NCBI RefSeq assembly: GCF_001194135.2
Contig: NC_069001.1
Coordinates: 32,439,443 to 32,503,442 of the forward strand
Length of the DNA stretch: 64,000 nucleotides
From: Octopus bimaculoides
Lineage: Eukaryota
Direction: 5' to 3'
A program made the position numbers and the translations under genes. The notes under the pieces were generated by a model, which saw only the letters and a program-made list of their open reading frames with translations, did no database searches and was not told the DNA's origin. Within the stretch, counting starts at the first letter, position 1, and each line of letters opens with the position of its first letter. Positions 24,301 through 27,300 of the stretch are shown one piece after another.

Positions 24301-27300
24301 CCATGCTGATATGGGTTGAAAAGAGGAATGTCTTAAGTTCTAATATCTGCCTTAGCATGGTTTCTGTAGCTAGATGCCTTTCCTAATGCCAACCATATCA
24401 CAGTCTGTACTGAGTGCTGGTCTTGTGACTCTGGTACTGGTGAGATTACCGAGTATTCACAAGACGAGACCCTCTCAACTGAGTTGGGTATGGTATTTAG
24501 GGATAAGAAATAGGGTAGAGGGACAGGGAGCTGGTGTCTTGCCGAAGAGTTGAATACATGACTTAACCCTTTTGTTACCAGCCTGGCTAAAACCACCTCT
24601 GTAGTACAAATGTCTTATTTTCATAAGTTCTGAATTAAAATCTTCCACCAAATCTTAGTCACGATTTAACACTATCTGAATGATAACTAAGTTATTTTGC
24701 TAAAAATGTTCTTGATTGAGAATACTGTGGTATGTTGAGAGGTGGAGACAGTATTAGTTCAGTGAAGGAAGGAATTAGGATATGTATATAGGTGCAGGCG
24801 TGACTGCAACCATTTGGTTGCTTCCCAACCATTTGGTTGCCTTGGTCAAGAGTCTTCTACAATAGCCTCAGTCCGACCAAAGCCAAGTCCTGGGGCTGAT
24901 TTTTTCGACTAGAGCCTTTCAAGATGGTGCCCCAGCATGGCTGCAGTTAAACGACTAAAACAAGTGAAAGGTAATAGAGACAGATGTAATTTTAATAAAT
25001 CAGGAATTTAACAAAGATTTTTTTATCTGGGTTTCCTCAAAGACACCATTGCATGTATGAAACAGTATCCAACTGTCATTTCACTGTTTATGTGTTACTA
25101 GTAGTTTCGTGATATGTGTTTGTGTTTACATGCAGTAAGATTTTATGAAAAACATCAGTTAGCTACTAACTTCTGGTAGCAACAATAGATTCTCCCTTGA
25201 TGAAAGGCACCTATTGAATGGAGTGAAACCTGGGCAGTGACTGCAGAGAATAGCATAGCTTTTAATATCAGGTGTTGTTTTCAACAAGCTCTAAAACTAT
25301 TATCACTTAAGTTATAACTCCTTATTTCTGACTCAATGATGGAAAAAAATTGTATTAGCTATTGATGTAGAATGAGAAAACCTATTTCTGAGAGTCAGAA
25401 AAACAAACATTTGTTAGTCTTCTCACAAGCACTGATGTTGCTTGAGATGTGTAAGTTTTATGAAGCATTACTGGAAAGCTAAATAGAACTGGTACATCCC
25501 TATGGATACACAGGTTGGTTGTCCTACAGACTTCCTCAATGCTATGCAGTATTATGATGGGATGATGTGGTTGAGCTGGATGTGAACAATCTTGATCAGA
25601 TGGTACTGTTTCACCTGAGACTGTCCTGGTCCTGCAATACAGAATCAGGTTCTGAATATCCAGATTATTTTATTTGTTTCAGTCATTTGCATGTGGCCAT
25701 ACTGGGGCACTGCCGTGAAGGGATTTAGTTGTCTCACCCACCCACACAAGTACTTTAAAAAATTGTTTAAAGTCTGGTACTTATTTAATTTCATATGTAG
25801 TGTTTCAAAATTTAGCTTAACTTTTCTGCTATCAACAGCCCTTAGAATGCCCTTGGTTCTCTAATTTCCTGTAATCTAAATTTCAACAAATATAGTAACA
25901 ACAAAAGGGTTAATATATCTAGTTATGAAAAAATATGTATTTTGCTAATTCTCTGAATTCCTGTATTTCAAAATTGTGGGTCTTGTGAAATGACAAATTT
26001 GGAGTGTGTGAAGATAAGCTGTGTAGCAACTTCATATTTTAACCAGAAAAATTGATTTTTTGGAATTCTCTTTCTGCAGTCCAATGATTTAAACCTATTT
26101 CATTATCTCTTGTGCTGATAATCCTGCAATTATGAGGACTTGCAGTTTTCTTCATGGCTATATTTGCTTTGCCTGCTTTTGCAGACTTGGATGATTTAGA
26201 AGTAATTTTTCTTTAACTCCATAATCAGCTGTATTTTGTCTTGTACTTCAATACCAGTAAATGTTAGGCTTGATAAAATTCCTTCAATTTTTTTCATTAT
26301 TAGTCATGGTTATAGATACAGGCATGGTTATGTGATCAAAAAGTTTGCTTCCCAACTATATGGTTTCAGTTTCAGTTCAACTATTTGACACCTTAGGCAA
26401 GTGTTTTCTACTATAGCCCCAGGCTGACCAAATCCTTGTGAGTGGATTTGATTGATGAAAACTGAAAGAAGGTAGTTTTGTGTGTGTCTCTCCTTGCCAT
26501 AACATCCTGTGATAGCTGTAAATAAGTGTCACTGTCATAATTCATTTCCAGTCTTCTAAACATGTTTGGCCATGGAGAAATATTACCTTGGAAACAGTTG
26601 ATGATTACTGACAGGAAGAGCATCTAGCCAAAAAGATTTACCTTAAAACATTCTGTCCAACCCATGTGAGCTGAGAAAAGTAGATGCTAAAACCGATGTT
26701 GCTGCTGTTGTTTTGTAGACACTGTCAAACTTAGGGCAAAGTTGTGATTGATGTTCATTTTGAACATTGGTGAGTGAAGAATTCTAGAGGGCTTAAGTTC
26801 TGAGAAGGAATGGTTAGTGTGCAGTGTACTAATTAATACTTTGCTAACCAAGCAACATTAATCCCTATTTCAGACTCAATGATGGAAACAATTGTATTAG
26901 CTATTGATATGGAATGAGAACACCTTTTTTCTGAGAGTCCTCACATTATATTGATGTTGTTTGGTTTATCAGTTTTTACTTCGATGTGTAAAAAAAAAAA
27001 AGTTATGACAAACTCCAGTTTTTCAGTATTGCTAAAACCCTGTGGTACCAGAACTGTGTAAGGAGGCAGTGGTTTGACCTGGAGAGACTCCCTGATTGCC
27101 AAGTTACACATCCTATCTAGTAACATTACTCCAGCTATCCTTCAAAGGAACTTCATTTCAGCCACTTGTGTTTGCAATCATACTGACAGGTCACCGATGG
27201 ATTCTTTGCTGCCTATGTTTCAAAAATGAAAAAAAATATTGAGAGATCTTAAAATACTTTTCCTTTAGTCTTGGAACAAATAGACTGCAATCGGTACAGC

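Follow-up and report, generated by a model that had tools for sequence, protein, structure and literature searches.

How old can the bond between a small nucleolar RNA (snoRNA) and its host gene be, and how far may the box motifs of such an RNA depart from their consensus while the guide itself is kept? Both questions are raised by a 64-kb stretch of the Octopus bimaculoides genome (contig NC_069001.1, forward-strand positions 32,439,443 to 32,503,442; hereafter the window), in which intron 3 of the gene RACK1 contains two copies, B1 and B2, of a box C/D snoRNA with the guide of vertebrate SNORD96. The presence of the two copies, to which a first-pass annotation had pointed, is confirmed here, and they are new, hitherto unannotated octopus members of this known family. 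From the sequence comparisons described below, we consider it highly probable that both are functional intron-encoded snoRNAs, orthologous to vertebrate SNORD96 and resident in RACK1 since before the protostome-deuterostome split.

Two SNORD96-type snoRNAs in an octopus RACK1 intron

The exact 10-mer TCCTGCAATT occurs twice in the window when both strands are searched, against a chance expectation of about 0.12 occurrences in 128 kb (our own arithmetic). Both occurrences are on the plus strand and directly followed by ATGA, as had been noticed in the first-pass annotation, and each is part of a complete box C/D architecture (Table 1). The terminal stems, which are seen in the minimum-energy structures computed with RNAfold, comprise nine pairs and one bulged U, so the 9-bp stem described earlier has the right number of pairs without being continuous; likewise, the B1 element had been placed at 26075-26146, which is the same element displaced by one base. 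The outermost stem pair is C-G in B1 and U-A in B2, a double change. In both C boxes the UGAU core is intact; B1 departs from the RUGAUGA consensus at positions 6 (U rather than G) and 7 (U), and B2 at positions 1 (C) and 6 (U rather than G). The CUGA consensus of the D box is replaced by AUGA in both copies. The pairings expected of a kink-turn (k-turn) are present throughout: G3A4/G3A4 and U5/U2 are intact, and C6:D1 is U:A.

What would these RNAs target? The guide UCCUGCAAUU ends at the D box and is antisense over 10 nt to the 5.8S segment AAUUGCAGGA, with a known 2'-O-methylation (Nm) site at D+5. Guide nucleotide 5, a C when counted from the D box, is opposite the G of AAUUG*CAGGA, which corresponds to human G75; with 5.8S reading as we take it to read, this is precisely the nucleotide to which the D+5 rule had been said to point. 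Methylation of this site is on record for human, frog, fly and Arabidopsis. Human SNORD96A resides in an intron of GNB2L1 (RACK1) and is the predicted guide of 5.8S Gm75 (PMC7812721). Drosophila Gm74, with a MethScore of about 0.97 by RiboMethSeq (PMC11014333 and preprint supplement), has been aligned to human Gm75 (SNORD96A/B), Xenopus Gm78 and Arabidopsis Gm79 (PMC11014333).

A permissive Rfam search ranks SNORD96 (RF00055) first for B1 as well as for B2. Its alignment with the octopus copies extends over the terminal stem and both the C and C' boxes, as well as the CUGCAAUU-xUGA block, and the core of the octopus guide does not differ from the Rfam consensus CUGcAAUU, with xUGA next to it. 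The orangutan (Pongo) RACK1 locus, which served as positive control, yielded matches to SNORD95 (93 bits) and SNORD96 (52.5 bits); orangutan SNORD96A has the boxes GUGAUGA and CUGA and the same guide as octopus. At gathering thresholds, Rfam gave no match in the window, nor in seven invertebrate and amphioxus loci, and in a permissive scan of five loci (E <= 0.5) SNORD96 was not among the families reported. Given these sub-threshold and missing matches, Rfam alone is insufficient to settle membership. The cmsearch check that had been proposed for a SNORD96-like guide thus speaks for it through the top-ranking family and a guide/D-box layout matching orangutan SNORD96A, but at scores below the 43-bit cut-off. 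An incomplete literature search returned no earlier report of SNORD96 in an invertebrate RACK1, of a UGAUUA C box or of the UGAUUA/AUGA form.

Table 1. Positions of RACK1, its intronic snoRNAs and their boxes in octopus (window coordinates), and of snoRNAs in the RACK1 loci of other animals (coordinates within loci designated L)
Feature	Location	Strand	Remarks
RACK1 host gene, coding sequence start to stop	21236..29446	+	tblastn and splice model
RACK1 intron 3	24192..27747	+	GT..AG, 3556 nt; hosts A1, B1, A2, B2; splice model
A1, companion box C/D snoRNA	25325..25401	+	10-bp terminal stem
A1 C box	25336-42	+	AUGAUGG
A1 D' guide	25350-61	+	UUGUAUUAGCUA
A1 D' box	25362-65	+	UUGA
A1 D box	25388-91	+	CUGA
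B1, SNORD96-type box C/D snoRNA, 72 nt	26074..26145	+	SNORD96 25.5 bits; model R1 64.7 bits; stem in minimum-energy fold
B1 5' stem	26074-82	+	CUGCAGUCC, then one spacer A
B1 C box	26084..26090	+	AUGAUUU, U at position 6
B1 C'-like box	26115-21	+	CUGAUAA
B1 guide	26122..26131	+	UCCUGCAAUU, complementary to 5.8S AAUUGCAGGA
B1 D box	26132..26135	+	AUGA, A1 pairs with C-box U6
B1 3' stem	26136-45	+	GGACUUGCAG
A2, second companion copy	26873..26939	+	C box 26879-85, D box 26931-34
B2, second SNORD96-type copy, 74 nt	27537..27610	+	SNORD96 29.5 bits; model R1 62.7 bits; stem in minimum-energy fold
B2 5' stem	27537-45	+	
B2 C box	27547..27553	+	CUGAUUA
B2 C' box	27580-86	+	
B2 guide	27587..27596	+	UCCUGCAAUU
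B2 D box	27597..27600	+	AUGA
B2 3' stem	27601-10	+	
Sepia pharaonis (cuttlefish), SNORD96-type (B)	L014 11519-11594, 11977-12051		2 copies; RACK1 intron 3, as in Octopus
Sepia pharaonis, A-type	L014 9486-9565, 10140-10220		AUGAUUA/AUGA
Ylistrum balloti (scallop), SNORD96-type			2 copies; RACK1 introns 1 and 2
Lingula anatina (brachiopod), SNORD96-type	L002 3988-4075		1 copy; RACK1 intron 2
Tubulanus polymorphus (nemertean), SNORD96-type			4 copies; RACK1 intron 6
Branchiostoma belcheri (amphioxus), SNORD96-type			2 copies; RACK1 introns 3 and 6
Astyanax mexicanus (teleost), SNORD96-type			2 copies; RACK1 intron 4 and vertebrate-specific intron after aa 296 (sensitive exon search)
Pongo (orangutan), SNORD96A			RACK1 intron 2
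Lingula x	L002 4973-5053		SNORD72-like, GUGAUUU/AUGA; below Rfam thresholds
Lingula y	L002 5733-5816		GUGAUCA/GUGA; below Rfam thresholds
Amphioxus z	L007 3982-4061		AUGAUUU/AUGA; below Rfam thresholds
Tubulanus SNORD52- and Z157-like candidates	L006 5014-5088, 4355-4439, 5399-5486		below Rfam thresholds
Astyanax SNORD95-like candidates	L011 6000-6065, 6562-6631		below Rfam thresholds

Variant boxes: covariation or decay?

In the box C/D k-turn, the 3b:3n pair is U:U and the 4b:4n pair is normally G:C (PMC5689011). In the nomenclature of that study, C6:D1 is 4b:4n, C5:D2 is 3b:3n, and G3A4 of the C box and of the D box form the sheared pairs. We compared these positions in 18 RACK1-hosted snoRNAs, namely the SNORD96-type copies together with the octopus companion snoRNAs A1 and A2, Lingula x and y, amphioxus z and orangutan SNORD95. 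C6:D1 is U:A in 13 and G:C in four, and C:G in a single case (Lingula y, in which GUGAUCA is matched by GUGA); it is unpaired in none. B1, B2 and all non-mammalian orthologues have U at C6 and A at D1, orangutan G and C. The A-type snoRNA repeats the pattern, being U:A in cuttlefish and G:C in octopus (AUGAUGG/CUGA), which is a second, independent double change at 4b:4n. U:A and G:C have thus been exchanged at least twice, in SNORD96 between fish and orangutan and in the A-type snoRNA between cuttlefish and octopus, with the C:G case besides.

The octopus boxes are therefore best described as covarying. The earlier proposal of a tolerated k-turn variant holds in so far as AUGA goes along with a paired C6:D1, U:A in 13 of the 18; the C boxes, which had been called degenerate, are not, because U6 pairs with A1 of the D box. 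Similarly, the premise of a canonical vertebrate SNORD96 applies to the G:C form of orangutan, but is too broad, since the teleost Astyanax carries U:A. Because U:A is found in all sampled lineages but orangutan, the only tetrapod sampled, it would by parsimony on present sampling be ancestral in the SNORD96 lineage, with G:C arising toward the one mammal included.

Could the variant boxes nevertheless be mere damage? B1, B2 or both might be decaying, non-functional relics, in which the guide survives because the copies are young. Their deviation from RUGAUGA/CUGA, including the U at position 7 of the B1 C box, would be expected of relics, as would the sub-threshold Rfam scores and a D' box and upstream guide that look degenerate next to those of Astyanax and Lingula. 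Yet the same UGAUU/AUGA boxes are found in six other tabulated species, and C6:D1 is never broken. Nor do the copies appear young. Self-comparison of octopus intron 3 aligns B1 with B2 at 86% identity over 80 nt and A1 with A2 at 88.6% identity over 79 nt, whereas the remainder of the two A-B units, flanks included, has diverged beyond detectable alignment; boxes, guide and stem have been kept over this time, the stem with the compensatory change between B1 and B2. That only the snoRNAs can still be aligned after the A-B duplication indicates purifying selection. Sepia, moreover, retains two SNORD96-type copies in the same intron 3, where they follow two A-type copies (order A,A,B,B; A,B,A,B in octopus), although the octopus and cuttlefish introns are otherwise alignable at poly-T tracts only. 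Retention of snoRNAs in otherwise diverged introns is the pattern that functional RNAs would be expected to leave, and we regard decay as very unlikely.

A stable host gene with a changing intron

RACK1 loci including introns were collected from ten further species, eleven with octopus, and searched for CUGCAAUU followed by AUGA, with xUGAUUx 50-70 nt upstream and a bracketing terminal stem, on the sense strand inside RACK1. A RACK1-hosted SNORD96-type snoRNA is present in eight of the eleven species: Octopus, Sepia, Ylistrum, Lingula, Tubulanus, Branchiostoma, Astyanax and Pongo. The training set of the covariance model R1 consisted of the two window copies together with those of Lingula, Ylistrum, Tubulanus, Branchiostoma and Astyanax; the scores of these copies, 52-77 bits, follow by construction. 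Both B-type copies of Sepia, which was outside the training set, are picked up at 62.8 and 55.7 bits. With R1, Pongo SNORD96A reaches no more than 23.8 bits; each box variant is thus a weak match to the model of the other. Homology can still be traced through intermediate taxa, because the teleost has the U:A boxes in common and the mammal has the guide and the host in common. Across species, 96.9% of the cells of the terminal stem are paired; shuffles give 84.3%. Both sides have changed in three of the five pairs, and the sole block invariant in all species carrying the snoRNA is the 5.8S guide plus the D box. The RACK1 loci of Dreissena (zebra mussel), Haliotis (abalone) and Stylophora (coral) contain no R1 match and, under relaxed guide patterns, nothing in snoRNA context (1763 N are present in the Stylophora locus).

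The claim that the pairing of host and snoRNA predates the protostome-deuterostome split is thus borne out by RACK1 copies in Sepia, Ylistrum, Lingula, Tubulanus, Branchiostoma, Astyanax and Pongo, with the qualification that the intron is not conserved and that the snoRNA is missing in three loci. For each of introns 2, 3 and 6 there is at least one protostome and at least one deuterostome with the snoRNA, and several species have copies in two RACK1 introns. These distributions would be explained most simply if the snoRNA had long resided in RACK1 and had been duplicated, moved within the gene and, in places, lost.

Alternatively, the snoRNAs may be functional, but their association with RACK1 may have arisen repeatedly, a highly expressed and translation-linked gene attracting mobile snoRNAs. 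Such recurrent capture would account for the differences in occupied intron among lineages, for the three loci from which the snoRNA is missing and for the other, unrelated snoRNAs hosted by RACK1 introns; the intron of ASC1, the yeast RACK1 orthologue, presumably hosts yet another one, U24. It would also agree with the long-term drift of intronic snoRNA positions argued by Hoeppner and Poole, in whose view these positions lack stability over long times (PMC3511168). Independent capture becomes less likely because the same snoRNA, the same gene and a rare box variant (G:C in orangutan) are shared by eight of eleven species, which represent seven phylum-level lineages. In addition, copies in two introns are the very intermediate expected for movement within a gene, and introns 2, 3 and 6 each being occupied in both protostomes and deuterostomes speaks against capture lineage by lineage. 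Overall, we deem repeated capture unlikely and favour ancient residence; SNORD96 and RACK1 would then be a case in which the position drifts from intron to intron while the host gene stays the same.

Companion snoRNAs and a putative dual-guide ancestor

A1 and A2 have canonical CUGA D boxes and the D' guide UUGUAUUAGCUA in common, with UUGA directly after it, but not their D guides. The common guide presumably pairs with 18S AGCUAAUACA, at about A166-A175 in human numbering, and D'+5 from UUGA would then fall on 18S U169, which is not known to be an Nm site in human. An identity of A1 and A2 as SNORD95 was rejected, because a search for the SNORD95 guide in the octopus RACK1 gene found none.

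How might the A-type and B-type snoRNAs be related? A block of A1 and A2, GUAUUAGCUAUUGA, recurs in both cuttlefish A copies and in the single SNORD96-type snoRNA of Lingula, which combines an 18S-type D' guide with the 5.8S guide at the D box. The terminal stem UGCCC/GGGCA is common to this Lingula RNA, Sepia A and Sepia B. Furthermore, the D-guide region of Sepia A reads CUUGCA-U and then AUGA, which looks like a decayed 5.8S guide. Taken together, these features suggest an ancestor with two guides that underwent duplication and subfunctionalisation in cephalopods. In Dreissena, a RACK1 intron contains GTATTAGCTATTG (L004 12297) with no C/D boxes that can be recognised; this sequence may be a remnant of an A-type or dual-guide snoRNA.

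A chicken catalogue lists U95 in GNB2L1, and a 5.8S-G75 guide nowhere (PMC2653536). A U:A-box SNORD96 may have been overlooked in chicken by consensus-based searches; the fit of this catalogue to a detection blind spot is only a lead. A more far-reaching scenario would unite these observations: the UGAUUA/AUGA k-turn with its U:A pair would be ancient, at least bilaterian, and would mark a RACK1 lineage descended from a dual-guide RNA (18S and 5.8S-G75, as in Lingula) whose two guides were parted in cephalopods when it was duplicated and subfunctionalised; absences of SNORD96 outside mammals, as in chicken, would be artefacts of detection, because annotation by consensus or at Rfam thresholds overlooks this form. 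We put this forward tentatively, and rather doubt that it holds in full.

Proposed biogenesis and action of B1 and B2

How might B1 and B2 be produced, and how might they act? Sequence features apart, the scenario that we envision draws on knowledge of the family. Both would be transcribed within the RACK1 pre-mRNA, and the terminal stem would join the C box xUGAUUx and the D box AUGA into a k-turn with sheared G.A and A.G pairs (C3:D4 and C4:D3), a U.U pair (C5:D2) and, at 4b:4n, a Watson-Crick U6-A1 pair replacing the usual G-C. SNU13/15.5K would bind this U:A variant, NOP58, NOP56 and fibrillarin would then assemble, and exonucleases would trim the intron back to the terminal stem. The 10-nt guide would pair with 5.8S positions 71-80 (human numbering), and fibrillarin would place a 2'-O-methyl group on the G that faces guide nucleotide 5 and corresponds to human Gm75 and fly Gm74. 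Over evolutionary time, the snoRNAs would be duplicated within RACK1 and move between its introns. Conceivably, the weaker U:A pair might also entail a distinct assembly or regulation of the small nucleolar ribonucleoprotein (snoRNP), linked to RACK1 expression.

Several observations weigh against functional, anciently RACK1-resident orthologues of SNORD96. The 5.8S sequence opposite the B1/B2 guide is the one presumed for bilaterians in general, not that of this genome. The octopus guide measures 10 nt, compared with 11-13 nt in other species, both SNORD96 scores are under the gathering cut-off of 43 bits, and three RACK1 loci give no R1 match. Four snoRNAs share one intron, with B1 1.6 kb from the 3' splice site; release would therefore have to be endonucleolytic or take another route independent of a single splicing event. 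Finally, alterations of stem II in other snoRNAs can interfere with the binding of core proteins in extracts, can be tolerated in oocytes (PMC6770171) and can, in a C'/D' motif, shift the methylated site (PMC5389607). In the light of this mutagenesis literature, the behaviour of a U:A terminal motif deserves a direct test.

Of the four snoRNAs, only B2 is near the 3' splice site, about 137 nt 5' of it, across the assembly gap at 27683-27692. This 10-N gap is part of a poly-T tract (27640-27735) immediately 5' of the intron 3 acceptor, and the true distance of B2 from the splice site is therefore uncertain.

The clustering of snoRNAs in one intron may also evoke a different function, in which the elements act mainly in cis on RACK1 (modulating its splicing, for instance, as intronic k-turn RNAs bound by SNU13) rather than as guides for ribosomal RNA (rRNA). 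Effects of intronic snoRNAs or k-turn RNAs on host splicing have been reported (PMC10324135; bioRxiv 10.64898/2026.08.03.742641). A mainly cis-acting role is disfavoured by the 5.8S guide and D box being the sole block invariant across species, and by flanking intron sequence that is not conserved. We give this possibility hardly any weight, less than decay or repeated capture, and retain the view of B1 and B2 as rRNA guides.

Comparison with known systems

The closest known relatives are vertebrate SNORD96A/B (U96; RF00055), which share with the octopus RNAs the box C/D type, a guide CCUGCAAUU directly 5' of the D box, the 5.8S G75 target, a sense orientation in introns of RACK1/GNB2L1 and a UGAUA-type C' box just before the guide. 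They differ in the boxes, which are xUGAUUx/AUGA (U:A) in octopus and GUGAUGA/CUGA (G:C) in SNORD96A/B. The octopus RNAs also have a shorter internal region (72-74 nt in total, with a deletion relative to the Rfam model) and no recognisable D' box, score below the gathering cut-off and reside in intron 3 rather than intron 2, as two copies sharing the intron with two other snoRNAs.

In Drosophila, snoRNA:CD34 (FBgn0086066) is the listed guide for 5.8S Gm74, the site that is aligned to human Gm75 and has been measured as methylated. Fly 5.8S, we assume, reads AACUGCAGGA at this site, so the CD34 guide must differ by one base. Other snoRNAs are hosted by RACK1 orthologues as well, SNORD95 in human and chicken and U24 in yeast ASC1; their guides and targets (28S/25S) are different from those of B1 and B2. 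For the box variant, the nearest parallel is the C'/D' motif of yeast U18 with its AUGA D' box (van Nues and Watkins, PMC5389607), where the snoRNP is active despite AUGA and an altered stem II. The U18 motif is internal, with an inserted nucleotide, and two adjacent sites are methylated, whereas the octopus motif is a terminal C/D motif of normal length with a clean Watson-Crick pair.

What is added by the octopus locus is bilaterian depth of the host linkage, covariation at 4b:4n and a suggestion of dual-guide ancestry. One pairing of snoRNA and host, SNORD96 in RACK1, is extended across Bilateria, and a stable host gene with a changing intron separates linkage at the level of the gene from linkage at the level of the site. 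The exchanges at 4b:4n amount to a natural compensatory-change experiment on this pair of the terminal C/D motif, and the comparison of A-type, B-type and Lingula snoRNAs points to a dual-guide ancestor subfunctionalised in cephalopods. An annotation blind spot is also exposed: at gathering threshold, Rfam reported none of the octopus, brachiopod, scallop, nemertean, amphioxus or teleost copies (the cuttlefish locus was unscanned).

Host locus and neighbouring features

Window positions 11236-39446 are 100% identical to O. bimaculoides CM046621.1 (32450678-32478888); the host gene is thus that of a cephalopod mollusc, a protostome. RACK1, located by tblastn with human RACK1 and a subsequent splice model, is an intact plus-strand gene with seven coding exons, and its 317-aa product is 100% identical to XP_014788051.1. 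A second RACK1 paralogue, considered because the nearest cluster representatives are 99% and 92% identical, was rejected, since the model matches XP_014788051.1 in full and the window represents the annotated O. bimaculoides locus. All four snoRNAs are in sense orientation to RACK1, and a simple C/D scan over the whole gene gave no further good candidate besides A1, B1, A2 and B2; weak C/D-like matches from our own scan at 24680, 25109 and 25562 have poor stems and were put aside.

TA/TG microsatellite tracts at 34380-35610 and 20089-20155 attract many sub-threshold Rfam matches (mir-297, mir-466, mir-1277 and others), which are low-complexity artefacts. Head-to-head with RACK1, a phosphatase gene of the Metallophos family (PF00149) occupies about 11236-20549 on the minus strand and extends further upstream. 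The same neighbour is found in Sepia, Lingula, Ylistrum, Dreissena, Haliotis, Tubulanus and Branchiostoma, and not in the Stylophora, Pongo and Astyanax loci; Metallophos and RACK1 look like an old bilaterian gene pair.

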